In this document: piece after piece, positions 853-61,329 of the stretch | Layout: every line of letters starts with the position of its first letter | Position numbering within the stretch: position 1 is the first letter of the stretch | Assembly: GCA_002104945.1 (NCBI GenBank) | Contig: MCFH01000076.1 | Span: 1 to 64,000 of the forward strand | Direction of reading: 5' to 3' | Length of the DNA stretch: 64,000 nucleotides | Source: Piromyces finnis finn | Taxonomy: Eukaryota; Fungi; Neocallimastigomycota | Program-made: the position numbers and the translations under genes | Notes under the pieces: generated by a model | The model's input: only the letters and a program-made list of their open reading frames with translations | Database searches by the model: none | What the model was told of the DNA's origin: nothing

Positions 853-864
853 CACTTTCAATTT

Positions 865-2005
865 TGTAAGAAATATTTGTGGCCATAAGTTTGCCCACAA
901 ATATTTCAATTGAAACCATGTCAAGAGTTAGAGTGGATTTAGAATTATAATTAAGTCTACTAGGTTAGGATAGGCTTAATTATATAGTAAATAATAAATT
1001 TTATAAATACAAGAGTAATAAATATAGTTTTTTAAGAAATATTTTATTTAATTTTTATAATATAAGTAAATGATAATTATTAATTTTAAATATTGAATTT
1101 ACTATATAAAAATGAGTATAATAATCTCACAAAGAACTTCTTAAAGTTGTTTTTTGTTCAACTTATTTATACTTCATTTTTAATATAATGTTGATATTAA
1201 TAAAGTATAATAATAATATAATTTAAGTTATACATGTATAATAATATAAATATAAATATTAATAAAATATAATAGTAATAATAATATAATTTTCTTTAAA
1301 TATCGATATTAATAAGTTGTTAAAAATAATATTAATAATTATTTAAATGAATCTTATTTTACTAATTGGTTTGTTTAATATTAATTAATTGTTACACTAT
1401 TTATCTCCGGATAATAAATAGCTTTCCAATTAATATTTATATTAAATAAACTATTATTAGTAAAATATTATTAAATTAATATTTTAATTAATTTAACTAA
1501 TAATTCAAAATTATGAAATTTCATGAAATGTCAAATTTCATGAATTGTGATTTTGACAAACCATATATTCTGGTCACCATTTATTGGCCAAATATATGCA
1601 TAACCATATATTAATGGTTATTAATTAAATAGGAAGTTTATTTGCTTTACCCAATCAAGTGGTAAAGAAAATAAACTCATATAGTTAAATAGTATAGTCA
1701 AAACTAACGTTAAATACTTTAGCGTTAGTATTAAAGTAAATTAATAACTATAATAATAATTAATGTAGATAATTATAATTAATAAATAAAAGATATAATT
1801 AAAATATAATTATTTAAGTAAAAGTTATTTCATAAAATATTTATATAAGTGTTTATATTTATTTTAGTGTTATAATATTTATTTTCCTTCTTTTATTATT
1901 TTTTATAAAACTTTATTTAGTTATTAACTCGTATAGAGAGGTAATAACTAACTTAATTAACTAATTTAATAACCTATTAACTAATATTATAATAAACCTT
2001 TTACA
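865..2005 (+). mobile_element. Solo LTR, family A (865-918 + 1564-2005), interrupted by solo LTR N
   Basis: TG...CA; near-identical to the LTRs of element A; TSD AATTT at 860-864 and 2006-2010. Confidence 0.93.
919..1558. mobile_element. Solo LTR N (640 bp) nested in the family A solo LTR
   Basis: TGTCAA...TTGACA inverted termini; TSD AACCA at 914-918 and 1559-1563. Confidence 0.88.
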
Positions 2006-2010
2006 AATTT

Positions 2011-2629
2011 TGTCAAAAAGCGATTTTTTATTAAAGAAAAGTGTGGTAAGCACACTAGTTATATTAATTAATAAATATAATACGCTTTCCTATTGAAGGC
2101 GTAAAGCTAATAATATTTATATAAAGAAATTTAAATAATATTTTTATTTTAGCAATAACTTAATATCAGCATATATTAAGTTATTAAAAATATTAAAATT
2201 TTTAAAGTTTTAGGTTTTATAGGAGTTTATAAATTTTATTAACTTTAGGTTAAAAAATTACTAACGCTAAAGCTTCGTAATTTTTGTCAATTTTTGTTCT
2301 TTTTATACATGAACAATTTTAATTATTACATTTTTTAATTTTAATTAATTATTATCTAATTATAAAATATTTAATTTTTATAAATTAATAATTAATATAA
2401 TTATTGTAAATAGTTAATAAATTTAAATTAAAATTTTTAATAATAAAATTTTAATAATTTTAAAAAATTTAATAATTTCAAATATTAGAAATTTTATACT
2501 TTGAAATTTTTTAATAAAAATTTAAAAAATAAATTTTTTCAAATTTTCAAATTTTCAAATTTTAAAAAAAATTTTTAATTTTTTCCATGTGTCCAAATTT
2601 TTTAAATTTTTATATATGTTATTGTGACA
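2011..2629 (-). mobile_element. Solo LTR, family B
   Basis: Near-identical to LTRs 40790-41408 and 46975-47593; TSD AATTT at 2006-2010 and 2630-2634. Confidence 0.95.
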
Positions 2630-2634
2630 AATTT

Positions 2635-3494
2635 TGTTGTTAAGGAATGAACATAAATAGTTGAATTAGCTAGAATTTTAGGAATTAACCTTCAACTATT
2701 TATATTCCTTACTAGTGTTTAACTCTATTTTTAAAATATAAAAATTATAATATATAATTTTTATACATTTTTCTAGTAATTATTAATATTTTTATTATAT
2801 AGTTATATTATTTGTATATAGTTATTTAAGACCTTTATTATTAGTATTAGTATAATTACTTATAATATTTTATACTTATAAATTTTACAAAATTTTATTA
2901 TTAAAATAGTTAGGTATTTTATTATTATTTAAGGTTTATTTTATTAATTAACTTTATTGTATAATATTTTATAATTTGAAATTATGACATAGAATTTAAT
3001 TATAATTTTTACTAAAAGAGGCAACTGTTACACACAAAACAGAAGATACCTCGACAGAAAAATTATTATTTATGTCTAAAAAAGGGCATAATTAATTGAA
3101 TAATATAATTTTATTATATGTCATAATTAAATATATAATATATGATATGCAAAAATGTTACACATATCATAAATTAAAATTTTATTAATTATAAATTAAA
3201 AATTTTTCTATTCAAATATTAAGAGATTATTCATAATATATATTAAGGATTTAATTAATATATGTTACAGTGAATGATCCATATATTATGAATGAAATCA
3301 ATTTAAATCCTTAGCTATCCAAAACCATTAAATTTCAAATAATGGATAGTTGGAAAAAGTACGAGGATTTTTGAGAAAAATTTTAAAAATTGAAAAATCA
3401 AAAATAAATTAAATGAATAAAAATTAAAATTAAATAAATTTTTATTTTTATAACTATTCAAGTGTTTTGTGATATCTTATTTGAACCGTAGCAT
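2635..3494. mobile_element. Probable LTR-derived segment D, right end unresolved
   Basis: Starts with TG directly after an AATTT copy; contains a PPT-like AAAAGAGGCAAC followed by TG at 3026; no matching terminus or TSD found. Confidence 0.4.
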
Positions 3495-3989
3495 TGTAAG
3501 AAATATTTGTGGCCATAAGTTTGCCCACAAATATTTCAATTGAAACCATATATTCTGGTCATCATTTATTGGCCAAATATATGTATAACCATATATTAAT
3601 GGTTATTAATTAAATAGGAAGTTTATTTGCTTTACCCAATCAAGTGGTAAAGAAAATAAACTCATATAGTTAAATAGTATAGTCAAAACTAACGTTAAAT
3701 ACTTTAGCGTTAGTATTAAAGTAAATTAATAGCTATAATAATAATTAATGTAGATAATTATAATAAATAAATAAAAGATATAATTAAAATATAATTATTT
3801 AAGTAAAAGTTATTTCATAAAATATTTATATAAGTGTTTATATTTATTTTAGTGTTATAATATTTATTTTCTTTCTTTTATTATTTTTTATAAAACTTTA
3901 TTTAGTTATTAACTCGTATAGAGAGGTAATAACTAACTTAATTAACTAATTAGCAACTTATTAACTAATATTATAAAAAACCTTTTACA
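3495..3989 (+). mobile_element. LTR, family A (495 bp)
   Basis: Near-identical to 39926-40420; followed by AATTT (3990-3994), but the left flank is AGCAT, so there is no clean TSD. Confidence 0.92.
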
Positions 3990-4830
3990 AATTTTATTGA
4001 TAACGGATTGTGTAAAATATTTTAAACTAAGTTCAGGTTTGTATACACTAACTAAACTAAACACTAGTTATAAATTTATTAATTATTAAACTTTTTATTT
4101 ATTAAATTATATTAAACTAAACTAAACTAAAACAACCGTTGATTACTTTACCGTGAAGGTTATTTCACCAGAGCCCTCACTAGGTAATCAATTATTAACT
4201 AATTAAATTAAAACTAATAATCTAAACTAACTATATAACTAAACTATACGATTTTCCAACTATCGTTTCAATAGTTGAAAAATTTTCTTTATTTATACTT
4301 TTTAAATAAATTGAATAAATTCTAATATACATGTTTTAATATTATAATTTTACATTGTTTACATTTATGCATTTATTAAAAGAAATTATTTGTATTAAAC
4401 TATTTAAATTCAATTTATTTACTAAAGAATTTTCTAAACTTAAAATAAAGTTTTGATTTATTTACTATATGGTTGATTATATTTCAAACATATATTTAAT
4501 TTATTTATTTCTAATTTTGAGGCTTAGTTTATAAAAAAATTTTTTTCTTATCTAAAATATTTATTGGTTAAAAATTATTTAATTTAAAAAATTTATTTTA
4601 TCATCAAAAACTTTATCTTATCATAAAATTAAATTTACATAAATTTATGTTAATGTATTGTAATACATTATTTTATCGTAACTTTAGATTTCACATAGAT
4701 TTATGTTAATGTATTGTGATATAAATCTTGTAAAGATTTACGGTACATTAATTCGATACATTGTACATTATTTTAAATGCGTATTAAAATACATTATTCT
4801 ATTAATACAATATTTTACATGCCCCTCTTC

Positions 4831-4957
4831 TTAAGTCGAGCCCCTGAGCGACTTATGTTTAAGGTATTCCTGGATCAATTGAGGGTCATCGATTTCATCT
4901 TCTTTAAGCCATGTACTTTCTGAAGGTAATAAGTTTTTCCAAACCATAAAGTAGTAC
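4831..4957 (-). pseudogene. Detached C-terminal half of the element C integrase chromodomain
   Basis: After removing J and one AGTAC copy, the frame reads ...GTKY-YFMVWKNLLPSESTWLKEDEIDDPQLIQEYLKHKSLRGST-stop. Confidence 0.9.
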
Positions 4958-6532
4958 TGTAAAAGTATAAAATTTAAAACAGATTTTATACTTAAAACAA
5001 AACAATTTTTAATAACACAAAAATAAAAAAATAAAACATTAAATTTTTATTTTAAAAAAAAAACATTTTTATTTAAACTCTTAAAAATATTATTAACTAT
5101 ATAATAGTTAATAATTAAAAAATTGAAAATAACAATTACATCGATTTAACAAATAAAAATTACATGTATTTATATTTTTTCATAATTATATTCTAATATA
5201 TTATTCTATTTAAATAAACATATATTTAATATAAAATAAACAAAACTAATTTAATTAAATAATAAAATAACAGAACTAAACTAAACTAATTCATTATACT
5301 TTTAATTCAATTTGAGTAAACTCAAAATTGAATAAAGCCCATGTATTTTCTATAAATTAATTTAATATTATCAATACTATTCTTAATATATTTCCTATTG
5401 AAATATAAATAAATCTATTTTTAAAACTAAGTTAAAATTATTAAACTATTCTAAATTTAAATAAAAAAGTATAATCTATTCTAAAATTAAATAAAAAGTA
5501 TTTGAAAAATATTTTAATTATTTAAAATATTTGAAATATTTAAATTTAATTAAAATTCTTTTATTCCTTAAACTTAAATATTTATCTTAATTTAAATTTA
5601 ACGGAATTATTATAAAATAATTTATTATTAAATTATTCCATAAAATTTACTCAAAAATTTTATAATCAGTTTTACTAAATATTAATTTATTATTTAATAA
5701 TTAATAATTAATTATTAAATAATCTAAAGATATATCTTATATCTTTACAATCTCGCCCTTTAAGTCGAGCTCCTGCGAGATTATTTTCTTGAAGAAATTT
5801 AAATAACAAATGGTTACTACTTTTTCTAAATCATAACATTGTTAAAAAAATATATAAGTATTTAATTTATTTATACTCTTATTATCATTCTTGTTACTTA
5901 TACATAATTCTAATAATTTATCTAAAACTTAATCATCAAGAATCCATTTGTTTTTATATTCAGATTATGGTTATTTATAAATTGTTTTCTATTAACATTT
6001 TTATTTAAGTATTCAAAACAAAACATTTACTTTAAGTTTCAAATTTTTATTTATTCAATTCTTCTTGATCATCATGACTTTTATAATCTTCTTATGCATG
6101 ATCAAAATTCTATTTTACAATTTTAATACTTTTTATTAATACTTATAATAATCTGTTCAACTTTCTTTGGTTTATTAGCTGAAGAAATTTCAATATTAAA
6201 TTTTAAATTAAATCCATAGTTTGTATAAAATTGAAATTGATTGATTGATTACAATAAAATATTATAAGTAGATTCCAATATAACAATCAATTCGATTTTA
6301 TTAACCAACGGTGATATTGGAACAATATCTCGTTCACCCTCTCATTTAAATGAAAAGTCTGTGATAAAATTTATATAAAATATATCAAACAGACAATTCT
6401 AAAATTATAAAGAAAATAGCATTTAAAGAGTATTAAATGTTTTTTATTATTGTACAAACTTTAAACCAAGTGGAACTTATTTTTTTTTAAAGGTTATTAT
6501 TAAGCAAATAAATATAACAAAATTCTTAGTAA

Positions 6533-9500
6533 TGTAATGAGGTATATCTAATGATAAGGGTTAGACTAGAAAATCATTAAGGTTAGATTAATGAAAATTT
6601 CATAATTATATTTTTATAACCAATCATTAAGTAATTAATTCACTTATCAAATTGTATTAAAAAAAAAAAAATAATTTTCATGTATAAAAGAGAGAATAAG
6701 AAAGATAAAATAGTTCTTTAGTGTTTTTATTAATAATTAATAAAAATTAGTTTTTTTTTTGTTTCGTCTTTAGTTTGATAATACACTGACCTAGCGAGTT
6801 AGTCGTATTATAATAATAAATTTAATAAATAAACATTATTAAAAAAAATACATATATTTGATACATTAGAGTGTGTGTGTTTATTATTATAATATTTCGT
6901 TACAATAAAAACACTCTAAGAAAAAGATCGCTACCTCAGTGCCTCGTTTATTTGCTTACTTCTAATTTTTTTTATGGATAACTCTGCTGATTTGAAGAAC
7001 GGTTTTGATGGCAACCGTCGCTACCTGAAGGGATTCTTAGCCAAAATGGACATGATCTTTATGATCCATCCTGAAATAGGAAGGGACGATGGAGAAAAGG
7101 TCTTCTACGTCGTTAGTCGCCTCTACGGGGATGCAATGAATTGGGCTGCTACCTTGATTAACAACCATGATCCTTGCTTACAGGATTATGGCGCCTTTGT
7201 TGGAAAGCTGAAGGCTGCTTTTGGTTTTCAGGATATGGTCTATACTGCCAACCAAAAGCTCAAGAAGATCAAACAACATGGCCTATCCAATACTCAAGAG
7301 TATATCAAGGAATTTAACTACTATGCTGATGAATCCACTTGGAATGAACAAGCCAAGATGGATGCTTTTGTTGATGGGTTGGACGATAGAATCGCCACCC
7401 ATATCCTTCAGATGTTTCCTGGCCCTTCTACCTTGATAAACTTACAAACAATAGCCAGTCGTATAGGAAGTAGATTGGCATGCCACCAAGAGGAAATAAA
7501 CAGAAGATCCAATAGAAGTTTCCGTTCTAAACAAAGCTTCCAATCCCGCTCCTCAGAAAGATCTACAAGTAAATCCACTCAGCCCAAGAAGGAAAATAAT
7601 TTTGGCCCCATTTCAAGTGAAGAACGTAGCCGCCGAATGAAAGAGAATCTCTGCTTATATTGTGGTAAACCTGGTCACCGATTATCTGAATGCCCTATTA
7701 GAACCAAAAAGGAAAACCATACTAATAATGCTGGGGTCCATGTTTTGAATGAACAAGAAAAATCCACTCGACTTTCGGATAACTCCTCTTTACCTCAAAC
7801 TGTTATCGATGTTGATGTTGTTCTTCCATACAAATCTGTCGGAACTAAAGTTCTCTTAGATAGTGGTTCACAATTCTGTTTGATAGACCACGCCTTTGTT
7901 AAGGCCCATGAGATCCCTATAATTACCAAAGTAAAATGCCCACAAATTATAGGTATCGGAGGTCACCAAAAGATTATCGGCCAGACTTGGCCTATAACTG
8001 TGGAACACATGAATCACTCATGCCAGTTACAATTTTACGTCGTAGAATTGCCTTCTTACTGTTGTATTCTTGGCTCTGATTGGCTGGCCCTTCACAATCC
8101 GACAATCAATTTTGCTAGTAAGGACGTTTCCTATCATTCTGAATACTGTAAGGAAAATTGCTTAAGGAAAGAATCTGCTAGCTCTACCACTTCTGAACTC
8201 GAAGACCAATCGAAGGACGAAATGTCAGTTGGAAATACACCTGAATACCCTTTCAATGTATTCACTTGTTTAGAAGAACCTGAAGTTGAGTCACCCCAAA
8301 TTCCAATTCACTACTCTCAACACTCCAAAGTGTTCGAGGAAAGGCTCGCTGATAAACTCCCTCCTCATCGCCCGTACGACTGTGAGATCAACCTGAGACC
8401 AAATAGCAACTTGTTTTATGGTCCAATCTACCGACTTACTGAGAAAGAATCAAAGGTATTAGAAGAAACCATTAATGAAAATTTAAAAAAGGGGTTTATC
8501 CGCAAATCCAAATCGCCAGCTGGTGCTCCCGTTCTGTTTGTCCCGAAGAAGAGTGGAGAACTTCGTATGTGTATCGACTACCGCCGCTTGAACGAAATCA
8601 CCATTAGGAACTCGTACCCTCTCCCATTGATCCAAGACATGTTGGATCATCTAGGAAAAGCTAAGGTGTTCTCGAAGCTAGATCTTCGATCCGCCTATAA
8701 CTTGGTAAGAATCAAAGAAGGCGATGAATATAAGACCGCCTTCACCTGTCAATTTGGCCATTTCGAATATCTGGTAATGCCTTTCGGTCTCAAGAACGCT
8801 CCTGCAGTCTTCCAACATTTTATTAACGACGTTCTTGAAGGCATTATCGGTAAATTCGTCTTTTCGTATATTGACGATATTATCATTTTCTCTGATAATA
8901 TAGCCGAACATCATGAACACGTCAATGAAGTCCTTCGTAGACTCGAAGAAGCCGGACTGTACGCTAAACTTGAAAAATGTCTATTCGACTCTCCTTGTCT
9001 TGACTTCCTTGGTCATAGAATCTCTGCCTCTGGTATCGGAATGGACCCTAATAAGGTGAAAGCCATTGCGGAATGGCCGACTCCTAAATCGGTCCATGAA
9101 CTACAATCTTTCCTAGGCTTAGCCAACTATTATCGTAGATTTATTCCTGGCTTTGCTAAGATTGCTCACCCACTCCACCAACTTTGCAAGAAGAACACCG
9201 CCTTCGTTTGGAACGATACCGCTCAAGATGCTTTTGATGCTTTGGTTAAGCATTTTATTAGTCAGCCTATCCTTGCATATCCTGATGTTGACCTACCTTT
9301 CGTTGTCGAAACCGATGCAAGTAACTTCGCCATAGGTGCTGTATTGTCTCAAGTCAACAAGTCCGACAATATTCTTCACCCTGTTGCGTTCTTTTCTAGA
9401 TCCCTTACAAACCCGGAGAAGAACTACCCTATCTATGATAAAGAACTTTTGGCTATCGTCGCGTCCTTAGAAGTGTGGAGACATTTTTTGAAAGGTGCGA

Positions 9501-11168
9501 ATCATCCTTTCAAAATTATATCAGACCACAGAAACCTCCTTTTTCAGAAGAAACCGGAGAAGATGACTCAGAGATTAATTAGATGGTCCCTTTTCCTTGC
9601 TGAATTCGATTTTGTCATTGAATATCGCCCTGGTTCCTCGAACGGGAAAACCGATGCCTTGTCAAGAAGACCTGACTATCTTGATCACTCTTGCAATTCC
9701 GATTCTAATAACTCTGTCTTTCGTCCCGAAAATTTCAGCTCCTGCTTTGCTTCATCCACTCCTTCTTCTCTTCTTGAAAAAATTGCTCTCTCTTGTAAAC
9801 TTGACAAATTCTTCATTGAGACTTCTAATCAACTTCTCAATGATAATTGTTCTTCTGACTACAAACTTAGTAACAACGTCCTCCTTTTCCAAGATAAAAT
9901 CTATGTTCCTAATGATTGCCGAGTTGAAATTCTGTCTTCTTGTCATGACTCCCCTGCTGCCGGCCATTTTGGTATTTCAAAAACTTTATCCTTGATTTCC
10001 CGTAACTACTGGTGGCCCAAAATGTATCAGGATGTTAAGGACTATGTCCGTTCTTGTGAGGTCTGCTGTCGTTCGAAATCCTCTAGACATAAACCTTACG
10101 GGTTATTATCCACTCTTCCTTTAGGTGAACGTCCCTGGTCTTCCATTGCTATGGATTTTATCACTGACCTCCCCTCTTCTCGTGGATTTACCTGTATCTT
10201 CGTTGTCATTGATCGATTGACAAAAATGGCTCACTTTATCCCTCTTGAAAAAGTTCCCACTGCTGAACGTGCTGCCGAAGCTTTCATTAACAACGTCTTC
10301 AAACTTCATGGATGCCCCTCCGACATTGTTCTCGACCAAGGTTCTCAGTTCACTTCAAAGTTTTGGAAGAAATTCTTTGCTACCCTCAAGATTGATTTGA
10401 AATACTCTTCTGCTTATCACCACCAATCCAATGGCCAGACGGAGAGAGTGAACTCCGTTGTAGAACAATATCTACGCTGCTTCTCAAATTACAAAGGCAC
10501 TAACTGGATCGAATACTTAAGCCTAGCTGAATTTAGTTACAATAATTCAGTTCAAGAATCTGCAAAACAAACACCCTTCTTCTTGAACTATGGTTTCCAT
10601 CCTAATTTTAATCCAACAATTCCAACAACAAGTGAAGTTCCAAGAGCTGAAGAATACACAAAAGAATTAAAAGAAATTATCAGCACCCTCAAGAAAAACC
10701 TTTCGGAAGCCCAAAAGAAACAAGAACATTTCGCCAATAGACATAGACAACCAGGCCCGTCATTCAAACCAGGAGAAAAGGTATGGTTAATCAATAATAA
10801 TTTAGTTAAGGGAAATAAAAAATTCACCCCTCGGAAACTCGGTCCCTATGAAATTGAACAACAAATATCAGAAGTCTCATTCAAATTGAAACTCCCTGGT
10901 AACATGAAGATTGATCCGGTATTCCATAAATCATCTCTCGAGCCTTACTTCGAAGGGAAAAGTACAAACCGAAAAGTTCAACCTCCACCACCTGTCATTA
11001 TAAACGAAGAGGAGGAATACGAAGTAGAAGAAATTCTGGACAAAAGAAGACGCTATAACAAAACTCAGTACTTGATCAAATGGAAAGGATATCCTATTTC
11101 AGAAGCCTCATGGGAACCCGAAGAAAATCTGAACTGTCCAGCAAAGCTAAGAGAATTCAACAAGACCC

Positions 11169-11200
<32 letters not shown>

Positions 11201-11982
11201 TAATAATAATAAAATTAACTAATTTTCATTAATTTTTAGACACAAATGAGGGAATATTAATTTTTAGAATAAACTTAACCGATACCGTTTTGGCGAAGCT
11301 CCCATAGGGATTTACTGGACTTACAAGCGTACCAAGAACAAGTACTATCAAACGGCCATATTGGAACCTTGCCTATGAAACCTCTAGTACTTGTTGGACA
11401 TACTTTAGTCTTGGCGCCAACCCGCCTTACATCAAAGTTACTCTACCAACCCCGACTTCGAACCCACAACCTTCTAGTTCATTGCCAACTACTCGACCAT
11501 TGTACCACACCTTTTAATTCTCATATGAAGTCAACTGCCTATTTAAAAAAAAAAAAAAAAAATTATTAGCTTATAAATTCGTCTGGAATCCGAATTTAGA
11601 GGAGGAGCTTGTAATGAGGTATATCTAATGATAAGGGTTAGACTAGAAAATCATTAAGGTTAGATTAATGAAAATTTCATAATTATATTTTTATAACCAA
11701 TCATTAAGTAATTAATTCACTTATCAAATTGTATTAAAAAAAAAAAAAATAATTTTCATGTATAAAAGAGAGAATAAGAAAGATAAAATAGTTCTTTAGT
11801 GTTTTTATTAATAATTAATAAAAATTAGTTTTTTTTTTGTTTCGTCTTTAGTTTGATAATACACTGACCTAGCGAGTTAGTCGTATTATAATAATAAATT
11901 TAATAAATAAACATTATTAAAAAAAATACATATATTTGATACATTAGAGTGTGTGTGTTTATTATTATAATATTTCGTTACA
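6533..11982 (+). mobile_element. Intact Ty3/gypsy chromovirus element H; LTRs 6533-6904 and 11610-11982
   Basis: TG...CA LTRs differing only by one A in a homopolymer as far as seen; TSD AGTAA; PPT AGAGGAGGAG. Confidence 0.97.
6974..11173 (+). CDS. gag-pol: Gag-Pol polyprotein of H (Gag with CCHC, protease, RT, RNase H, integrase, chromodomain)
   Basis: [14 protein letters not shown]; LLDSGS; YIDD; HHCC and DDE integrase motifs; [11 protein letters not shown]...YLIKWKGY...SWEPEENL. Confidence 0.97.
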
Positions 11983-12239
11983 AGTAATAAAATATTTGTA
12001 AAAAAAATTAACATTCATTAATAATAATGGAAAAACATCATTCAATAATTATATTAACTATACCACTATTTTTTTTTTAATCTTATTATTAAATAAACAA
12101 AAGTGGTATCAAGTCATCAAGTAAATACTATAATTTAATTAACAAATTTATCATTTTTAGACATTTTTAAAATACTTTTAGCATATTTATAATTCTCTTT
12201 TATTTTATAATTTATCAATATATGGTATTATAAAATTAT

Positions 12240-12720
12240 TTCTTTTTTTAAAAATTTAACAATGAATTCATAAATTTAAATATCATCAATAAAACATCAC
12301 AGAATTGATATAAACATATACATAATGTTGTACTAAATATTATTAATTATAAAGTAATTAAAATACTTCATCAAAAGCATCGCTTAAAATATTAAAATAG
12401 AGCTGATACATTTTTGAATAAAAGGTATGATAATAAATTAAAAATGCCATATAAAGATTAAAGCAATTTTAAATTCATCACCTTATTTAATTCTTACTAA
12501 GCTATTGATATATTTAAATTTAGTTTAAAAACATATTTTACTCCATTTATCTTATTTATTGATTAAAGGAATATATGAATTTCAATAATTATATCTTTTA
12601 ATTTCCTACAATCAATATATAGTAATTATAATTATCAATCTCATTATACTTCCATTAAAAAGAATTGTATAAAGATTAAAATCTTTTTTTTTTCCTTTAT
12701 AAAGTTCGTTTTATTAAGTA
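12240..12720 (-). pseudogene. Heavily decayed Ty3/gypsy reverse transcriptase remnant inside J
   Basis: Minus-strand fragments in correct order: YIDCRKLKDII, NSYIPLI, LVRIK*GDEFKIA, IPF, FKNVSALF, CFIDDI*IY, with stops and frameshifts. Confidence 0.8.
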
Positions 12721-13656
12721 CATAAAAACTATTCATTTATTAAAAACTCTTATAATTATTATACATATTACATTAATTTATATTTGTTTTATTCATTATA
12801 TTTATTACATTTATCATATTTATTAACTTATTCTATTTATTAATTTATTCTATTTATTACATTTTATTATATTTTTTTTTCATTTGTTGTATTTATTAAT
12901 TCTATTTTTTTTTAATTATTATTAATACTAACTATTATATTATCAAATTGTTACTATTACTAAAACTATTCCTCATTAATTTCTATTATAGCTATTTCTA
13001 ATTCTACAATACTAAATGAAATTAAGAACAGATCCAGAATAGATTAATTTTCTAGCTCTGATTTCACTGCCATCATATTATTAAGAATAAAAAAATATTA
13101 CACTCATTTCTTATTATATATTTATTTAACTTTATAATTATTCAATCAAAGCTACTATATTAATTTATTCAAGTTATTTGAATCTTTTAAATATAAAACT
13201 TACTTCTTAATAAAAATATAAACTTATTAACTAGATATACAATAACTTCTTTATAATAAATTCAAATCAAATTAAATTTGTGAATTTATTCTACAATTAT
13301 AAGAAATTCTTTATTTAATTAATTTATTTTAATTTATTAATTATAAAAAACATAATTTATTTAACAACTAAATTTGTAAAACCTCCTCATATTGAATTCA
13401 AATTATTTTAATTATTAATCTTAATCATTTGTTTAATGAATTATTTAATAAACTATTACAATCAAATTATCTTAATTTACTAAATATAAAAATAATTTTT
13501 TTTTTAATAAATGTATAACTTTTTAAATAACTAAATTTGTATTGACTTTTGTTGATAAATTCAAATCAAATTAAAAATGCTTTAAATTTATATTCTAATT
13601 ATTAAGAATTTTCTATTTAGTCAAATATTCAGTTATATAAAATACACATTTATATA

Positions 13657-14605
13657 AAAGAAGTCAACTCCATCCTATCAACTGGTGTCAGCGAATTCTT
13701 TATAAAGTATAAAACATGTTATTACAATGAAATTAAATTATTTTTTTTTAAGCTCGTTTTCGTATTACTTCATAATATTTTAATATATTATTTAATAAAC
13801 TTCTTAATTGTTTTATCTAATTTAATTAATAATATATAATCCTTGAATATATTTTATTTATTTATTTAGTTAATCGAATTTATATTGTATCTTCATATTA
13901 AAGAAGTCGACCTGACTCTATCCTTTAAAGAAAAGGTGTCGTCGAGTTCTTTATTTAGTATGAAGTTAAATTATTTTAAAAGTGATTTTAAATATCAAAT
14001 CATTTTCTAACTTCATTAAATAAAATTATATATTTCAAATTTTCAAGTTAAATTAATTTATAGTATTTTCAATTTAATTTATTATATACTATTTCCCAAA
14101 AAGATGTCGATCTGACTCTGTCCTCTAAAAAGGTGTCATCGAAATCTTATTATAATAAAGAATAATTTATTTATTTAACTAACTTTACACATTTATTACT
14201 TTTACTTTTATTGTAAAATTTTAATTCATTTCTTAATTTTAATTTATTATATACTATATCAAAAAGATGTCGCTCAGACTCTATCCTATCAAACGGTGTC
14301 GAGCGAGGTCTTTTAAGTATATAATAAGTTCATTTCAAAATAACAATTAATAATTCATTCAAATAAGTGAAATCAACATACTAATTCACTTATTTCTCAA
14401 TATATTTAAATAATTTTAAAATTTTATTAACTTTTTCTTAATTTTCTTTCTTTTTAAATAAGTTTTAATTTTCTTACTTTGCAATTAATTTTTTGATTTA
14501 ATTTACTCTTTTAATTGTATATATCCAATTTAATTTATAATATACTATGTATAAAAGATGTCGCTCAGACTCTATCCTATCAAACGGTGTCGAGCGAGTT
14601 CTTTT
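13657..14605. repeat. Five dispersed ~50-nt stem-loop motifs (approx. 13657-13701, 13900-13952, 14101-14148, 14262-14314, 14553-14605)
   Basis: Conserved core GACTCTRTCCT...GGTGTC closed by covarying stems; separated by AT-rich spacers. Confidence 0.88.
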
Positions 14606-15127
14606 TATAGTATATTATAATTAAATTTAATTTTAAAAGAGTTTCATCAATTTAAAAACAAGAGTATTTCATATGTATATTTCTATTAGTATTACAGATA
14701 GATTTTATATATAAAGATTTCATTGTTCCATACAGTAGAGTTACACTTATTCCAATTCCAATATAAAAAGGAAAGTTTCACAGAGTGTAAGGAAATGTGT
14801 TCTTAACAATAAAAAATTTATAACAATTTACTAAAATAACTTAGTAAATATAAAACACTTTTATCTTACTGTTAATTATTAATATTTAAAATTATTATTA
14901 AAAACACACAAATTTTAACTTAATAGGTTAGTGTTTAACGATAATTTATTAATTAATAAAAACTCAATTTTTTTTTTTAAATTTAGAAAAATCCACTCGT
15001 ATTTATATAAAAATTTTTAAAATTAATCTAAAAGATTTTTTACAACTTAAATTTCTTAACCAATCAAAGAATTTCGAGTTGATAAAAAATAAAAAAAATT
15101 AAAATAAAAATAAAAAAAGTAATTTAG

Positions 15128-19808: not shown

Positions 19809-19911
19809 TTTGACTTATTATTAGAAGCTTAGATTATTTGACTTTGACTTTTGATTATTGTTAATTGATTTAGGAAGCTTAGACTACCACTTAAACTTGA
19901 GATTATACTTG

Positions 19912-19942
<31 letters not shown>

Positions 19943-53100: not shown

Positions 53101-55535
53101 CAAAACCCTACCTAGGTTTTCTCCTTAGGGGGGCATTGTAAGAAATATTTGTGGCCATAAGTTTGCCCACAAATATTTCAATTGAAACCATATATTCTGG
53201 TCATCATTTATTGGCCAAATATATGTATAACCATATATTAATGGTTATTAATTAAATAGGAAGTTTATCTGCTTTACCCAATCAAGTGGTAAAGAAAATA
53301 AACTCATATAGTTAAATAGTATAGTCAAAACTAACGTTAAATACTTTAGCGTTAGTATTAAAGTAAATTAATAGCTATAATAATAATTAATGTAGATAAT
53401 TATAATTAATAAATAAAAGATATAATTAAAATATAATTATTTAAGTAAAAGTTATTTCATAAAATATTTATATAAGCGTTTATATTTATTTTAGTGTTAT
53501 AATATTTATTTTCTTTCTTTTATTATTTTTTATAAAACTTTATTTAGTTATTAACTCGTATAGAGAGGTAATAACTAACTTTGTAAAAGTTTTACTAAAC
53601 TTATAATTTAATATTAAAATATTAAATTAAATAAAAGGTTAAAAGATAACTAGGTTAGAAAAAAAAATGTTTTATTAAAATAATCTTAATTGATTTATAA
53701 ATGAATAATTATATTATGTATTATAGTTAAAATAATTCCTTTTTATTTTATTTAAAGAATATATATAATAATAAGATTATTTAATAGTAATACTTATTAA
53801 GTATTAATAAGATAATAATCTTTACAAAGATTTAATTCATAAAACTATTCTAAACTATTTATACTATTTGTAATTTTACATTTAATACTAAAATAACTTT
53901 TTAGTACATGATTATATTCATAATATATTTTATAATACTAAGGCTAAACTTAAGACTTACTACTAATTATTAAAAATAACTATTGTTTATATATTTATAA
54001 TATTAATTATTTCTTAATTATAATATAATTCATTGAATATAATATTAATAATTATAATCTTTTAATTCAAAGATTATAAATTATGTTATTGAAATAATTA
54101 TTATAAAATAAAGTTAATTAGTTCCGGAAAATAATTTTAATTTAATTAAACAATATTTTTTTTATACTTTGAGTGAATGATTTATGTTTGATATATCAGG
54201 GGTGATCATTCTCTGAATAAACAATTAATCATTGCTAACAAAATATCTTTAAATTGGAATATCTCGTGAACCAGCAGAGATATTGACCTGATTTTAAGAT
54301 ATGTTGTTTGTCTCGAGCGTGGCTTTCTAACGAACTTAATTATAACCAAAATATTTTTATTCAAAAATCGTCATTCGTTGAGGAGATACGCGTGTTTTTT
54401 CTTATTCCATTTTAACGATAAGGGTTAAAGTTATTTATTATAAAAATTATTAAGGGTTAAGGTCATATTTTAACCTTTTCTAAATTTTTAAATATTTCTT
54501 AATAAAATTTTATAATTTATTTGAAAATAAAATATTTGTTGATTTTGAATTTTCATAAGTGATTTCACAATTCCAAGTGATCTTGAAATTGTAATTTCAC
54601 TAGTATTCGTGACATCGCTCCGCCAAAAAAAATCGAATACCAGGCGATTGGAATAATATAAAATAAAGTTGTATAATAAAGTATAATTGAAATAAATTGA
54701 AGTAGTATATATTAAATATAAACCAATATATAGTTGTATGTGTAACATGAAATAAAATGGTAACTAAATAAAGAATATATTTAATATAATATGTTGAATA
54801 TATTGCAATATATGAAATAAAATTAAAAAACATTTTCTTGTGTAACATTCAGTCAAATTCATAAAATTTTTGAAAGAAATGTTGAAATTTAAATTGATCA
54901 TTGAGTGAAAAAATTGAAATTCGTACGAAAAATTAAAATTTGAATAAGAAATATTATTCCTAGGATATTGAAACACTTTTTATTTTTGAAAAATGTTAAC
55001 ATTTGCTAAAATAATTGAAATTTCAAAAATTGATCAAATAAACTTTAATTAATATGATTTTGAAAAAAAAAAATTTTTGAAATTTTTGAAAAATTTTTAA
55101 TAATAAAAAATTTTTTCATTAAATACAAAAAAAATTTTGAACTAAACTTTTGAAAAAATGTCACTGAAAGAATATTGATTTTAATGATCGATCGAGATAG
55201 TGACAATATTGAAATTGATACTATTGAATAGAGAATAAAATAAGCATTAACAACATATAAATATTTGTAATTGTACTGCTAAAATAAATTGAAAATTATT
55301 CTCTTTAAATATTTAATTTTCATTATAAAAATTTTGTGTTTTAAATTAAATAAATTGATAAAATTGTTGGATCAAAAATTATTGAATTGAAATTTAACAT
55401 TCATAGAAAAAAATTTTTGAAATTTGTGTTGAAATGTATTAGATGAGTAATACAAATTATAATAAAACATAATGTTAGTGAAAGATATTAATAAATTTTT
55501 AAAAAAATAAAATTGTTGAAATGCAATTTAAAGAA

Positions 55536-58500
55536 TTAGATTTTGTGTTTTCTAATACTTTTATTGAATTGAATTAATAATTCTTGATATCTTGGGTCAC
55601 TTTCTATTACTGTAGCAGGAACCCAGTGCCAACTTAGGCGGTGATTATAACGAATTTTATATTCGTAGCGTTTTTCTTTATAATTTGTCCTAAAGTCACC
55701 AATTTCTATAATTTCTGCATTAGTTTCTTTATATTTAAATCTATTTTTAAATTTATCTGGCGTAGATACATAAGGTTCAAGTTCCGATATGTGAAATACA
55801 GGGTGGTGTTTTGGAAAAGGTGATTTTGAAATATCTATTTTATAATTACCATTGTTTAAAACTTCTAAAACCTTGTAAGGACCATACTTACGAGGCGCTA
55901 GTTTGGTATTTTCAGTAGTAGCAAAAGCAGGAGGTGCATGAATCCAAACTTTTTGTCCTTCATTCAATTCAGGAGCAATAATTCTTTTCTTATCGGCAGC
56001 TCTTTTGTATAAATCTTGAGATCTAAGCAAAACATCTTTAACTAAAAGGAAATTTTTACTAACATCTTTAATGTATTTAAAGTTTGAATCAGAACCTTGA
56101 AACAAAAAGACATCATCCATAGGTGGGTGGAATCCATAATTAATGAAAAATGGAGTTTGTTTTGTAGATTCATGAACAGTATTATTATAAACAAATTCAG
56201 CTAGATGTAACCATTCAATCCAGTCATCGTGGAAAAATGTTCTTGAATAGCAACGTAAATATTGTTCAATGAAAGAGTTACAACGTTCTACTTGACCAAC
56301 GGTCTCATGGTGATCTGTGGTAGCTATTTTTGGCTTAACACGCAATTTTTCCATAATTTCTATCCATAAAGCACTAGTAAATTGTGTTCCTCTGTCCGTA
56401 TAAATATCTGTAGGTAGTCCATGGAGTTTAAAAATATTTTTTAGGAAAGCTTTGGCAGTTTCTTCAGCTGTAGGTATTTCTTTGAACGGAATAAGGTGAA
56501 TCATTTTTGAAAAGCGATCTACAACAACCATTATAACGGAAAACTTTTTTGATTCAGGGAGACCACAAAGAAAATCGATTTCAATAGATTTCCAAGGGCG
56601 ATCAGGAATTTCTAAAGGTCTTAAAAGATCATATCTTTTATGTCTATTAACTTTATTTCTGGAACATTGTTCGCAAGAATTGACAAAATTTACGATATCT
56701 TGATGCATTTTGGGCCACCAAAAATTACGGTTAATTAGTTCTTCAGTTCTTCGAATACCTAAATGTCCAGCAGTAGCGTTATCATGGTACCTGGTTAAAA
56801 TATCTACATGAAGTTTTTCTGGTACATAAATTAAATTATTATATAAAATTAAATTATTTTTTATTTTAAATTTTTCCATTTTTCTGAAAGGTCTGTAAAA
56901 GTAACCTTGATTAGCATTATTAGGACTAAAGTAAAGATAAATATTATTCGCATTTTCATCATCCTTATAATTTTCTATTATTTGATCAATGAGAGAACCA
57001 ACAATACCAACAAAACATGGAGTATCGGGAACGTTTTTATAATCTAATATATGTTCTGGTTTAGGTTCAACATTATTTTTCTCGTAATCAGGTCTTCTTG
57101 ACAAACTATCAGGTTTACCATTTTTTCTTCCTTGGCGGTATATTAATTGAAAATTATATTCTTGGAAAAATAAATGCCAACGATGTTGACGTTGGTTTCC
57201 GACTTTACCACCTAAGGTGTATAGAAGGTTTTTATGGTCAGTAAAAACGGTTACTTGGTATTTAGCACCTAGTAATAAATGTCTCCAGGTAGAAAATGCA
57301 CATTTTATAGCTAAAAGTTCCTTTTCAGTAATTGAATAATTTAATTCAGCATTGTTTAAACATCTTGAATAATATGCTACAGGATGTAATTTGTTATCTT
57401 CATCCTTTTGAGAAAGTATACAACCAATGGCAAAATTACTAGCATCGCATTCGACAATAAATGGTTTGGTTGGATCTGGATGTAATAAAATAGGTGAAGA
57501 GATTAGTCTCTTTTTTAATTCTAAAAATGAGTTATTACATTTATCATTCCAATTAAAACTAGTATTTTTCTTTGTTAAATTGTGAAGCGGTTTAGCAATA
57601 GTAGCAAAATCTTTTATAAATCTTCTATAATAGTTGCATAATCCAACAAAGCGTTGAACATCTTTTACACAATTAGGTGTAGGCCATTCTTGGACAGATT
57701 TAATTTTCTTTGGATCAGTAGATATACCATTGCCTGATATAACGTGTCCTAAAAATTCAACTTCTGGCTTGTGAAATTCACATTTCTTTAATTTAGCAAA
57801 TAAATTATTTTTGAGCAATGTTTGGAGAACAGTACGAACATGTTGTATATGTTCATCTAATGTTTCCGAGTAAATCAGAATATCATCTAAATATAAAATA
57901 ACAAATTTTTCTAAATAAGGGCGTAATACTGAATTAATAAATGATTGAAATGTAGCAGGGGCATTTCTTAAACCAAAAGGCATTACTAAATATTCATAGT
58001 GACCATATTTAGTTCTAAAAGCTGTCTTATATTCGTCTCCTTCACGAATACGCACTAAATTGTAAGCAGAACGAAGATCTAATTTTGAAAAGAATTTAGC
58101 ACCTTTCACTCTTTCGATAATATCAGTAATTAGAGGAAGTGGGTAAGAATTGCGAATTGTAACTGCATTTAATTTTTTGTAATCAATACAAAGACGTAAC
58201 GATCCATCCTTCTTTTTCTGAAATAAAACAGGATAACCAGCTGGAGATTCAGATGGTCTAATGAATCCTTTCTTGAGATTTTCATCTATGTATTCTTTAA
58301 GAACTTGGGATTCATCTTCAGATAGAGGATATATAGGACCATAATGTAAAGAAGCATCTTTTTGTAAAACGATTTTACAATCCGTTAGCCTATGTGGTGG
58401 TAGTTTATCAGCCTTAACCTTGCTGAAAACTTCCGCTAAATCACGATATGGTTCTGGTACTTCTTCTAATTTGAAGTCTTCTTCATTATCATCTTCATCA

Positions 58501-59243
58501 TCAGTATTATAATCTTTTTCACTATTAGCTAAAAATGAGTGAATAAAGTAATTATAGCTGAAATTTTGATATTTTGGTTTAGAGTAATTTTTCAAATTAT
58601 TAAAAGATGTATTGGAAGTTAATTTATTATGATTAATGTTTTTAATTTTTAAATTTTTGGATTTATTCAATCGGTTTTTATTAATTTTATATATAATTTT
58701 ATTAGAATTTAATTTTTTAAAATTGTTAAAATTTAAACTTGAATATACAAAATTTTTATTATAATTAAAATGTAGTTGATATTTGTGTAAAAATTTATTG
58801 CCTAATAACAAATCTGTTGGAAGATTTTTAATAATTAGAAATTTTTCTTTAAAAGTAATTAAAAATTTTGAATGATTAATATAGATAGTAGTCTTAAAAT
58901 ATAAGAAGGTGTATGTATCAATAAATATTGAACCACTAATTCCATTTATTTCAATTGAGTGTAATAATTTGTGTGGTTTTAGTTTTAATTTATTGACCAA
59001 GTTGATTGAAATAAAGTTGCAATATGAGCCACTATCTAAAATTAAATTGTATTGATTTTTATTAATTGAATTTTTTAAATCATAAAGTTTGTTTAATTTA
59101 ATTGGGATAAAAAATTTTAAGTTGAAAAATGTTGTAGGCAATTTTTTATTTATTTTAGAGTCATATGTAGGAAAGTTGTAATGTATTATTTTTGTATTAT
59201 GAACTCTCTTAGACTCTCTTGAGAGTTCATTTCTTAGTTTTTT
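55536..59243 (-). CDS. pol: Pol of E (protease, RT, RNase H, integrase, divergent chromodomain-like tail), via -1 frameshift
   Basis: LILDSGS; YLDD; HHCC/DDE; frame is open from the slippery site at 59237-59243. Confidence 0.93.
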   Translation of the reverse strand, partial: KKLRNELSRESKRVHNTKIIHYNFPTYDSKINKKLPTTFFNLKFFIPIKLNKLYDLKNSINKNQYNLILDSGSYCNFISINLVNKLKLKPHKLLHSIEINGISGSIFIDTYTFLYFKTTIYINHSKFLITFKEKFLIIKNLPTDLLLGNKFLHKYQLHFNYNKNFVYSSLNFNNFKKLNSNKIIYKINKNRLNKSKNLKIKNINHNKLTSNTSFNNLKNYSKPKYQNFSYNYFIHSFLANSEKDYNTDDEDDNEEDFKLEEVPEPYRDLAEVFSKVKADKLPPHRLTDCKIVLQKDASLHYGPIYPLSEDESQVLKEYIDENLKKGFIRPSESPAGYPVLFQKKKDGSLRLCIDYKKLNAVTIRNSYPLPLITDIIERVKGAKFFSKLDLRSAYNLVRIREGDEYKTAFRTKYGHYEYLVMPFGLRNAPATFQSFINSVLRPYLEKFVILYLDDILIYSETLDEHIQHVRTVLQTLLKNNLFAKLKKCEFHKPEVEFLGHVISGNGISTDPKKIKSVQEWPTPNCVKDVQRFVGLCNYYRRFIKDFATIAKPLHNLTKKNTSFNWNDKCNNSFLELKKRLISSPILLHPDPTKPFIVECDASNFAIGCILSQKDEDNKLHPVAYYSRCLNNAELNYSITEKELLAIKCAFSTWRHLLLGAKYQVTVFTDHKNLLYTLGGKVGNQRQHRWHLFFQEYNFQLIYRQGRKNGKPDSLSRRPDYEKNNVEPKPEHILDYKNVPDTPCFVGIVGSLIDQIIENYKDDENANNIYLYFSPNNANQGYFYRPFRKMEKFKIKNNLILYNNLIYVPEKLHVDILTRYHDNATAGHLGIRRTEELINRNFWWPKMHQDIVNFVNSCEQCSRNKVNRHKRYDLLRPLEIPDRPWKSIEIDFLCGLPESKKFSVIMVVVDRFSKMIHLIPFKEIPTAEETAKAFLKNIFKLHGLPTDIYTDRGTQFTSALWIEIMEKLRVKPKIATTDHHETVGQVERCNSFIEQYLRCYSRTFFHDDWIEWLHLAEFVYNNTVHESTKQTPFFINYGFHPPMDDVFLFQGSDSNFKYIKDVSKNFLLVKDVLLRSQDLYKRAADKKRIIAPELNEGQKVWIHAPPAFATTENTKLAPRKYGPYKVLEVLNNGNYKIDISKSPFPKHHPVFHISELEPYVSTPDKFKNRFKYKETNAEIIEIGDFRTNYKEKRYEYKIRYNHRLSWHWVPATVIESDPRYQELLIQFNKSIRKHKI
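59199..59243 (-). promoter_or_regulatory. Programmed -1 ribosomal frameshift signal of E
   Basis: A AAA AAC just before the gag stop, 6-nt spacer, 10-bp hairpin ATGAACTCTC/GAGAGTTCAT. Confidence 0.85.
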
Positions 59244-60144
59244 GAGTTCATCTTTTGAACTTTATTGACATAATTATTATTATTGTTTGAATTTTGATAA
59301 TGGGTTTTATTCTTATTGAATTTCCTATTGTTTCTCTTATTGTAATGTTGATTTTTATTATTATTATTATTGATATTTAATTTATTATTAGTAGCAAGAG
59401 AATTTTCAAAAATTATACACTTTGTAACCATTTCACTTAAAGTGTTAGGTAAAATATCAGCTTTCTTAATTTCATTCTTATATTTTGGATGTAAACCATT
59501 TAAAAATATTAGTGAAAGACTAATGTCATCTATCTCTAAACAACGACTTAAATCTCTAAATTTGTTAATATAATCGTTCACTTTTCCATAAGCTTGTCTT
59601 AATTCTATTAATTGAATCATGGCTAATTTGGTACTGGTAACATTTGAAAAAGCTTTGTTTAATTCACTTAATAGTTCGTTCATAGTCATAGGAGTAATAC
59701 CATCTTTATATTTAATATGATACCAAGTTCTGGCAGAATCACGTAATCTAACAACAACAAAGTTAATTTTTACTTCTTCAGATAGTTGATTGTTAGGTGA
59801 AGTTTTAAAGGTAGCTTGGCAGAGTTCGCAGAATAACTCAGTCTGAGTAGTATCACCAGTAAAGAATCCTGGATCTGGTACTTGTTTGATAGGATAGGTT
59901 CTATTACGCATTATAACATCATGATCTTCATCATAATCAGTAGAAGATTCCTCGGTTTCAGTATAATTAGCACGACTCTTAAGTTCCTTTAACATAGCAT
60001 CCATACGTTCTAACAAGGAGGTGGTATTTTTATCCAATTGTTGAGTGATATACTTGTCTAATTCACCACAAAGATTTTTCTTAAATTCTTCTAAATCTTG
60101 AGGCTTTAGGAATTGTTGAACTGGTTTAGGTGTTGGTTGAGTCA

Positions 60145-60145
<1 letters not shown>
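59234..60145 (-). CDS. gag: Gag of element E
   Basis: 303-aa ORF following the PBS; capsid-like PDPGFFTGD motif; no CCHC. Confidence 0.88.
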
Positions 60146-60175
<30 letters not shown>

Positions 60176-61329
60176 TTAAATTAAGTTTTTTCCTAAGGTA
60201 GTTATGGTAAAAAACGCGGTAAAGATTATTGTAAAAGTTTTACTAAACTTATAATTTAATATTAAAATATTAAATTAAATAAAAGGTTAAAAGATAACTA
60301 GGTTAGAAAAAAAAATGTTTTATTAAAATAATCTTAATTGATTTATAAATGAATAATTATATTATGTATTATAGTTAAAATAATTCCTTTTTATTTTATT
60401 TAAAGAATATATATAATAATAAGATTATTTAATAGTAATACTTATTAAGTATTAATAAGATAATAATCTTTACAAAGATTTAATTCATAAAACTATTCTA
60501 AACTATTTATACTATTTGTAATTTTACATTTAATACTAAAATAACTTTTTAGTACATGATTATATTCATAATATATTTTATAATACTAAGGCTAAACTTA
60601 AGACTTACTACTAATTATTAAAAATAACTATTGTTTATATATTTATAATATTAATTATTTCTTAATTATAATATAATTCATTGAATATAATATTAATAAT
60701 TATAATCTTTTAATTCAAAGATTATAAATTATGTTATTGAAATAATTATTATAAAATAAAGTTAATTAGTTCCGGAAAATAATTTTAATTTAATTAAACA
60801 ATATTTTTTTTATACTTTGAGTGAATGATTTATGTTTGATATATCAGGGGTGATCATTCTCTGAATAAACAATTAATCATTGCTAACAAAATATCTTTAA
60901 ATTGGAATATCTCGTGAACCAGCAGAGATATTGACCTGATTTTAAGATATGTTGTTTGTCTCGAGCGTGGCTTTCTAACGAACTTAATTATAACCAAAAT
61001 ATTTTTATTCAAAAATCGTCATTCGTTGAGGAGATACGCGTGTTTTTTCTTATTCCATTTTAACGATAAGGGTTAAAGTTATTTATTATAAAAATTATTA
61101 AGGGTTAAGGTCATATTTTAACCTTTTCTAAATTTTTAAATATTTCTTAATAAAATTTTATAATTTATTTGAAAATAAAATATTTGTTGATTTTGAATTT
61201 TCATAAGTGATTTCACAATTCCAAGTGATCTTGAAATTGTAATTTCACTAGTATTCGTGACAAACTTAATTAACTAATTAGCAACTTATTAACTAATATT
61301 ATAAAAAACCTTTTACAAAATTAAAAGTG

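Follow-up and report, generated by a model that had tools for sequence, protein, structure and literature searches.

Ty3/gypsy retrotransposons at recurrent distances upstream of two tRNA-Arg genes of the anaerobic gut fungus Piromyces finnis

The window analysed here comprises 64,000 nt of contig MCFH01000076.1 of the anaerobic gut fungus Piromyces finnis (positions of elements refer to the whole window), in which two divergent tRNA-Arg(TCT) genes enclose 60 kb of nested long terminal repeat (LTR) retrotransposons of the Ty3/gypsy type. When later insertions are removed by means of their target-site duplications (TSDs), the elements beside the tRNA genes, designated here by letters, prove to have inserted at recurrent distances from the mature tRNA 5' end, namely 12, 15 and 66-67 bp, and different lineages use different distances. 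Results of our analysis indicate that the integrases of these elements are probably positioned by the RNA polymerase III (Pol III) pre-initiation complex rather than by the sequence of the target DNA. The Pol III machinery is the best explanation because the DNA on the far side differs at every 12-bp insertion and because the three targets near -66 differ from each other. As a part of the same explanation, it is probable that the two tRNA-Arg genes originally lay about 0.9 kb apart and served as a repeated landing pad for Ty3/gypsy elements.

Insertion distances and the lineages behind them

The only tRNA genes found in the window by ARAGORN and Rfam are those of the divergent tRNA-Arg(TCT) pair; they are 100% identical, have T-runs on their 3' sides, and differ at one base in the 12 bp upstream. 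Elements between them were delimited by self-BLAST and direct reading of all junctions, with the TSDs as guides for the removal of later insertions. The 60 kb form a consistent nest of 17 elements: an exact TSD accompanies every element with two readable ends, except full-length A (AAATC/AAATT, 4 of 5 bases), and the rejoined halves of split LTRs match intact copies without gaps across the junctions. The elements of the nest are Ty3/gypsy (Metaviridae) LTR retrotransposons: their LTRs end in TG...CA, and Pfam domains follow in the order RVT_1, RT_RNaseH, Integrase_H2C2, rve and SH3_Tf2-1 in A, B, E, F and M.

Six independent insertions (three of A, two of B and one of D), in both orientations, are located 12 bp from a tRNA gene after removal of later insertions, and the 5-bp duplication made by A, B and D beside the tRNA genes is always at -12 to -8. 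At the left gene this recurrent TSD, in tRNA orientation, is the AATTT at 860-864. The probability that six insertions share one identical position by chance is <1e-11. With each insertion at 12 bp the site is formed anew on the tRNA side and older elements are displaced outwards, so that the far-side DNA was a different one each time (the end of L, the end of A, the start of D and the end of B). The use of one phosphodiester position by six insertions despite differing far-side sequence argues for recognition from the tRNA side.

Two insertions, that of F and, less securely, that of L, are found at 15 bp. The former reaches this distance once A is removed, and the latter once the stack of 12-bp insertions is removed. 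Both have the same orientation, with a TGATA-type end facing the tRNA gene and a 4-bp TSD at -15 to -12; the chance of TGATA at a fixed position is 0.0017. The third distance is represented by N and G (66 bp) and E (67 bp), whose respective targets, AACCA, ATATA and AACTT, are situated in different LTR ends. Three insertions would fall within 1 bp of each other by chance with a probability of ~2e-4 in a 200-bp zone and ~7e-6 in a 1-kb zone. Both element orientations are present at each distance. No further insertion hotspots were found in the window; M, Q and R, which have canonical chromodomains, are not located at recurrent distances from tRNA genes and are nested in other transposons. These distances and TSDs had been proposed in a sequence-only reading of the same DNA, and our reading of the junctions and the arithmetic agree with it.

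It is highly improbable that the pattern is a product of chance and post hoc reconstruction, or of misassembly of the nested repeats. The reconstruction for F and G does rest on an assumed order of events, and LTR identity is not a reliable clock. Its use to order F and A was rejected, as the LTRs of M are 100% identical while M must predate P, Q and R nested in it, whose LTR pairs are 99.75%, 99.2% and 99.5% identical, respectively; this suggests LTR homogenisation or too few differences for dating. However, exact 4- and 5-bp TSDs and the seamless rejoining of LTRs are not expected from misassembly, the chance estimates amount to <1e-4, and there is one confirmation from outside the window, described below.

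The assignment of different LTR families to different distances, also a part of the sequence-only reading, is borne out by polymerase identities and by the colinearity of LTRs. Identity between the polymerases of A and B is 60%; compared with these two, those of E, M, Q and R each reach 42-49% (44-48% in the case of E), and that of F is an outlier (~32% identity). LTR families were compared by local alignments with shuffled controls, as short-word BLAST gave only AT-rich noise. The LTRs of G, E and N are colinear over 370-490 bp (z = 5-11 relative to shuffles; z = 11.4 for G and E), and thus the far class belongs to one lineage. The start of L (TGATAACGG) fits the conserved F-type LTR starts TGATACG, TGTTACGG and TGTTACGAG of F and external loci. 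The data support the division of the distance classes into distinct lineages: A/B (and D), F/L and E/G/N.

The far position recurs outside the window. A JGI metagenome contig (L011) contains an E-like element, with a polymerase 64% identical to that of E, whose LTR starts at 6349 and is separated from an opposite-strand tRNA-Val(TAC) gene by 64 bp according to ARAGORN, or 65 bp according to both Rfam and a direct reading of the acceptor stem. The DNA between this LTR and the tRNA gene is native, with no LTR at -12. Therefore, the far position requires neither a resident LTR nor the leader of tRNA-Arg, and its recurrence at an unrelated tRNA-Val gene makes it a property of the E lineage. In total, the far class comprises four events (66, 66, 67 and 64-65 bp) at three different genes of two tRNA species. 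The E-like element of L011 is present as a tandem array (LTR-internal-LTR-internal, 6349-17539, period of 5676 bp, 100% identical), which may be either a true tandem or an effect of assembly.

An alternative explanation of the 66-67 bp distance is a preference of the E lineage for a site 54-55 bp inside resident LTR ends, or for the first positioned nucleosome. Indeed, each of the three far events of the window interrupts an LTR of the 12-bp position at 54-55 bp from its end, and Ty1-type elements are known to use nucleosome surfaces upstream of tRNA genes (PMC5911963). We regard this alternative as unlikely, since the three LTR targets differ in sequence and belong to opposite LTR ends, and since the element of L011 is at a comparable distance in native DNA. 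Moreover, the E-lineage insertions, although a small sample, span 3-4 bp and thus form a single sharp position, unlike the Ty1 pattern, which is broad (up to about 1 kb) and has a period of roughly 80 bp. A nucleosome edge fixed by TFIIIB might define the far position.

Several observations weigh against the positioning of these elements by distance from the tRNA gene, or against the distance classes as delimited here. The distal end of L was chosen post hoc as TTATCA followed by TTAT (0.09 chance matches are expected in the stretch), and the similarity of L and F LTRs is not significant (z = 2.3). D lacks a readable distal TSD. The values of 15 bp for F and 66 bp for G assume that both inserted before A. 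Of the three B copies, one is nested in A at a large distance from any tRNA gene. The targets of the 12- and 15-bp classes are only two, and these are paralogues with nearly identical 15-bp upstream regions, so that sequence and distance are not fully separable for these classes. Among the external loci, three E-like ones (L008, L009 and L068) have no tRNA gene in flanks that are short or next to an incomplete 5' LTR: the 5' LTR of L008 appears truncated, and the LTR ends of L009 and L068 are not fixed. Two further E-like loci are a collapsed LTR-internal assembly with no flank (L073) and an open reading frame (ORF) only (L074). L011 is the only E-like contig whose flank could be used. Four F-like loci (L069-L072) are accompanied by no tRNA or other Pol III gene. 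In three of them (L069, L071 and L072) 1-10 kb of DNA is available on both sides of the coding region, with LTR ends that could not be placed, and L070 is truncated at the 5' end; F-like LTR ends are too decayed for the reading of TSDs. These four loci weaken the case for the whole F lineage being directed to tRNA genes.

Further searches for external loci gave no flanked locus of the A/B lineage; a scan of prokaryote genomes with an A/B alignment yielded a single mis-binned contig of 3.2 kb with no flanks. A comparison of the window tRNA-Arg with metagenome DNA gave no match, and that of the L011 tRNA-Val gave 54 loci, all unrelated and mostly marine, with no AT-rich fungal context. Viral contigs scanned with the E polymerase gave nothing.

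The three distances had been proposed as three fixed registers. The distances themselves stand, but they are better described as two zones, since 12 and 15 bp are only 3 bp apart. Our results support the proposal in part: the zone close to the start site and that at about -65 are robust, with 12 and 15 bp as a fine split within the former. In the window this split is real, although its events are few. Possibly, there are two zones only, with 12 and 15 bp representing the same start-proximal site cut with a stagger of 5 or 4 bp, or with F not directed to tRNA genes and its position incidental; we think of this as a tentative alternative. The 12- and 15-bp duplications abut and have position -12 in common, the 15-bp class consists of two events, of which that of L is weakly delimited, and the F-like loci outside the window lack a Pol III gene. 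On the other hand, the TGATA-type ends of F at one tRNA copy and of L at the other both lie at exactly 15 bp, F and L share their orientation and have 4-bp TSDs, and the start of L matches the conserved LTR start of the F lineage. The 15-bp register with 4-bp TSDs and TGATA ends, as claimed in the sequence-only reading, holds for two events in the window and finds no counterpart at the four external F-like loci.

The choice of the 12- and 15-bp targets might also be sequence-specific, if the integrases read a local motif (AAATT and the next 7 bp, AAATTRAAAGTG) or the start of the tRNA gene. This possibility draws on the near-identity of the upstream 12-mers and the identity of the two tRNA-Arg genes, which are paralogues and hence share the motif, and external scans revealed no third, unrelated tRNA gene with an A/B or F insertion. 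However, the full-length B inside A has the TSD TCGTA and flanks unlike the motif, which indicates that B does not need it; the sequence beyond the 12-bp site changes at every insertion; and related fungal and amoebal elements at the start-site position are directed by Pol III factors (PMC5911963). We therefore find sequence-specific choice quite improbable and prefer positioning by the Pol III complex.

Integrase C-termini and a possible mechanism of positioning

The integrase tails of A, B and E that follow the SH3-like domain can be aligned with the canonical chromodomains of Q and R. While Q and R are positive for the Pfam Chromo domain (PF00385), A and E give no match and B gives a match with E = 0.11; in the tails of B and E most positions of the aromatic cage are lost. 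In AlphaFold models, the C-termini of E and A (mean pLDDT of 82.6 and 80.2, respectively) fold into an SH3-like barrel, after which come three strands and a helix. The best Protein Data Bank match of both models is Ty3 integrase in the complex of intasome, TFIIIB and tRNA gene (7q5b), and the next matches are histone-binding chromodomains (root-mean-square deviation of 1.3-2.6 A). For the integrases of A and E, the prediction is thus an SH3 domain with a degenerate chromodomain behind it. The chromodomain of M integrase (22651-23349 + 4820-4957, minus strand), split by P with the TSD AGTAC, looks canonical.

In the case of Ty3, a 'vestigial' chromodomain binds Brf1 and downstream DNA and was termed a 'ruler' by the authors of the structure, in which TFIIIB covers the region from -15 to -32 relative to the start site (bioRxiv 10.1101/2021.07.27.453949). 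By analogy with Ty3, the duplications of A/B (and D) at -12 to -8 would coincide with or adjoin the expected Pol III start site, as in yeast. Integrases of A/B (and F) may dock on the gene-proximal side of TFIIIB and cut at the start site in a Ty3-like manner. Each 12-bp insertion would regenerate the site on the tRNA side and in this way lead to a pile-up with the newest element innermost. F/L occupy this zone as well, shifted outwards by 3 bp, and duplicate the 4 bp at -15 to -12. The elements E/G/N integrate at -62 to -67, beyond the region known to be covered by TFIIIB in yeast. If the start site is ~10-12 bp before the mature end, E-type elements would be placed ~20-25 bp past the upstream edge of TFIIIB, and they may be tethered by the upstream face of TFIIIB or by a feature that TFIIIB positions. 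The SH3-like domain together with the degenerate chromodomain would correspond to the Ty3 module that contacts TBP and Brf1, and its divergence may set the distances. From these comparisons we infer the tether formed by TFIIIB or TFIIIC, the location of the start site and the role of the chromodomain in setting the distance.

It is conceivable, though doubtful, that the same degenerate chromodomain gave rise to two rulers in sister lineages, one for the gene-proximal face of TFIIIB (-12/-15) and one for its far, Bdp1-side face (about -65), and that a bare B box within the gag gene of a transposon itself may attract the first kind. If true, these lineages would form a natural pair in which to map the way an integrase measures its distance from a transcription factor.

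The full-length B located away from tRNA genes has a sequence of this kind in its vicinity. The B-box consensus has four matches in the window when both strands are counted (0.05 expected by chance), and a palindromic one at 47663-47674, in the gag coding region of A, is the only one outside the two tRNA genes. It is separated by 70 bp from the end of the nested B (47593-47598), a spacing that differs from the 64 bp at real tRNA genes and speaks against an equivalent placement of B. No tRNA-like RNA was found at 47663-47674 by ARAGORN or Rfam, even at relaxed thresholds. As a hint rather than a firm result, this B box may be a candidate cryptic TFIIIC site that attracted B.

Composition of the nest and its surroundings

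The tRNA genes, the elements of the nest and other features mentioned above are listed in Table 1.

Table 1. Features of the analysed window of P. finnis contig MCFH01000076.1
Feature	Position	Strand	Remarks
tRNA-Arg(TCT), left target	779-852	minus	ARAGORN; Rfam tRNA, 69.9 bits; mature 5' end = 852
Left 12-bp spacer, tRNA to innermost LTR	853-864	minus	AATTT at 860-864
A solo LTR	865-2005 (865-918 + 1564-2005)	plus	AATTT at 860-864 and 2006-2010; 12-bp position; split by N
N solo LTR	919-1558		TSD AACCA (914-918, 1559-1563); inside A solo LTR; 853-918 = 66 bp
B solo LTR, left	2011-2629	minus	AATTT at 2006-2010 and 2630-2634; 12-bp position originally
D, tRNA-proximal part of LTR element	2635-3490		AATTT at 2630-2634, then TGTTG...; 12-bp position originally
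A 3' LTR remnant	3491-3989	plus	GCAT (3491-3494) and LTR 3495-3989, then AATTT at 3990-3994; older A at 12-bp position
L, first 13 bp (TGATAACGG...)	3998-4010	plus	TSD TTAT at 3994-3997
M, chromovirus	4011-28228	minus	809-bp LTRs, 100% identical; TSD GATTG
P, nested in M	4958-22655		TSD AGTAC
Q, chromovirus nested in P	6533-11982		TSD AGTAA
R, chromovirus nested in P	14786-21479		TSD CAGAG
L, rest	28234-28844	plus	Ends ...TTATCA, then TTAT at 28845-28848
Probable original spacer between divergent tRNA genes	28849-29721		Deduced residue after removal of all elements
B solo LTR, right	29727-31480 (29727-30294 + 31432-31480)	plus	TSD AAATC; 12-bp position before F and A arrived
G solo LTR	30295-31426	minus	TSD ATATA; 54 bp from B proximal end; 54 + 12 = 66 bp
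F, divergent Ty3/gypsy	31482-39917	minus	561-bp LTRs, 100% identical; TGATACG... start; 4-bp TSD ACAA
Full-length A	39926-61317	plus	3' LTR ends 12 bp from right tRNA; TSD AAATC/AAATT; carries B and E
Full-length B in A gag region	40790-47593	minus	LTRs 100% identical; TSD TCGTA; away from tRNA
B-box consensus in A gag coding region	47663-47674		Palindromic; only one outside the two tRNA genes
Full-length E in A 3' LTR	53582-61262	minus	1033-bp LTRs, 100% identical; TSD AACTT; 61263-61329 = 67 bp
Right 12-bp spacer	61318-61329	plus	AAATT and 7 bp
tRNA-Arg(TCT), right target	61330-61403	plus	ARAGORN, Rfam

On the left side of the nest, the solo LTR of B is 98.7% identical to the LTRs of full-length B, and D has no second copy in the window according to self-BLAST. 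D is followed directly by GCAT, and the match of 3491-3939 to 53133-53581 in BLAST includes this GCAT, which represents the final 4 bp of the internal region of A (the end of the polypurine tract). The joining of D to an A 3' LTR via GCAT points to a deletion that removed the distal part of D and most of an older A. The ends of L (TGATAA...TTATCA) are separated from each other by the 24-kb M.

All long ORFs between the tRNA genes encode Ty3/gypsy polyproteins. The G+C content is 13-20% in LTRs, ~13-24% in 2-kb, mainly non-coding segments, and 30-43% in coding stretches. An exact look-up of seven window proteins in a protein collection gave no entry. Among named relatives, gene models of Orpinomyces sp. 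(JGI Orpsp1_1) are nearest, with identities of 69% (E polymerase) and 68% (F polymerase), and closer relatives (up to 86%) are encoded by short metagenome contigs. These relatives and the base composition are in keeping with an origin from an anaerobic gut fungus (Neocallimastigomycota).

The resident LTRs next to the tRNA genes have AT-rich ends, which supply the DNA on which TFIIIB would have to sit. At the right gene, the 3' LTR of A places TATAAAAAA (61288-61296) at -30 to -22 from the tRNA. At the left gene, the 5' LTR of A opens with a 12-bp inverted repeat, AAATATTTGTGG ... CCACAAATATTT (871-906).

Downstream of the left tRNA gene, positions 1-510 consist of a 15-bp unit (TATTATTCATAAAAA and its variants) repeated in tandem ~34 times, after which a C-rich motif (CACCCCT repeats) is found at ~560-600. 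A solo-LTR family, S, has two copies that are 94% identical: one (35353-35955, TSD TCTAT) interrupts F, and the other (62356-62970, TSD CTTAG) interrupts, downstream of the right tRNA gene, a Ty1/copia-like fragment (Pfam Pol_BBD, 62050-62379). A diverged, reverse-oriented copy of the P LTR at 63188-63745 (79-92% identical to 5090-5751 and 21996-22665) indicates that P-type elements are also present outside the nest bounded by the tRNA genes.

The whole 60 kb was also considered as one composite element with tRNA-bearing terminal inverted repeats. This was rejected, as the homology stops 12-17 bp on either side of the genes and serial insertions account fully for the interior.

Comparison with known systems

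For Ty3/gypsy elements, insertion close to the start site has been established in Saccharomyces, Yarrowia, Candida, Schizosaccharomyces japonicus and dictyostelids (PMC5911963). Similarly to Ty3, Tj1, Tyl3/Ylt1/Tyl6 and Tca8/beta, the elements described here have the Ty3/gypsy domain order, a 5-bp TSD, both orientations, and a base-precise start-proximal site. The modelled C-termini of A and E, with an SH3-like domain and a vestigial chromodomain, likewise resemble that of Ty3. The distance of 12 bp differs from the about 15-19 bp from the mature end in the case of those elements (about 15 bp for Ty3: PMC5006619, PMC5911963). In contrast to the Ty3 group, the host is very AT-rich, several lineages and distances occur at one gene, and one B copy lies away from tRNA genes; the P. 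finnis elements are known from sequence alone.

The sequence-only reading knew of no described locus with three such registers. This claim of no precedent was too strong: the families listed by Spaller et al. (2016, Table 1) include DGLT-A families at 10-11, 13-16 and 15 bp upstream of tRNA genes, together with two from Dictyostelium lacteum at 63-64 and 55-65 bp (PMC5006619). With both a near class (10-16 bp) and a far class (55-65 bp) published, neither position is new in kind. The elements of P. finnis resemble DGLT-A (D. purpureum DGLT-A.1 to A.3 and D. discoideum DGLT-A, at 10-16 bp) in the lack of a canonical chromodomain. D. lacteum DGLT-A.1 and A.2 are the sole published LTR precedent that we found for the far position, and stacking of insertions was noted there as well (PMC5006619). 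The hosts of DGLT-A belong to another eukaryotic supergroup, and DGLT-A was compared by its published description only. While the near and far classes of dictyostelids occur in different species, here both are found in one genome and at the same genes.

A second zone beyond TFIIIB is also used by Dictyostelium TRE5-A, in a B-box-dependent manner, and by P. pallidum NLTR-B (~40-64 bp upstream) (PMC5006619). Unlike the far class of P. finnis, those are non-LTR elements with target-primed reverse transcription, broader windows and no integrase. Q, R and M, with their canonical chromodomains, nest in other transposons as chromoviruses of the Skipper-1 and Tf1/MAGGY type do. A, B and E differ from chromoviruses in falling below the Pfam Chromo threshold, although their tails derive from the same domain, and these tails parallel the diverged chromodomains of the tRNA-associated Skipper-2 (PMC5006619).

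Full-text searches found no description of tRNA-associated retrotransposons in anaerobic fungi. Our results suggest that the host group is new in this respect, with anaerobic gut fungi as a third distant group after yeasts and social amoebae. Three further aspects also appear to be new: the occurrence side by side, in one genome and at the same genes, of a near and a far class that belong to related lineages, the link of the distances to a predicted degenerate chromodomain, and the recovery of original insertion distances by the stepwise removal of later insertions via TSDs. Where insertions are stacked at a tRNA gene, the original distances are obscured (Spaller et al. 2016, Table 1 footnote, PMC5006619), and the removal of the stack by means of TSDs yields distances that were treated as undeterminable in earlier surveys. 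The targeting of Pol III genes is a model for the finding of safe sites and for the steering of integrase by host factors, and this model so far draws on a small number of yeasts and social amoebae. Elements that are related and share a domain layout, yet have clearly different base-exact distances at the same gene, would make the question of what sets the distance directly testable.

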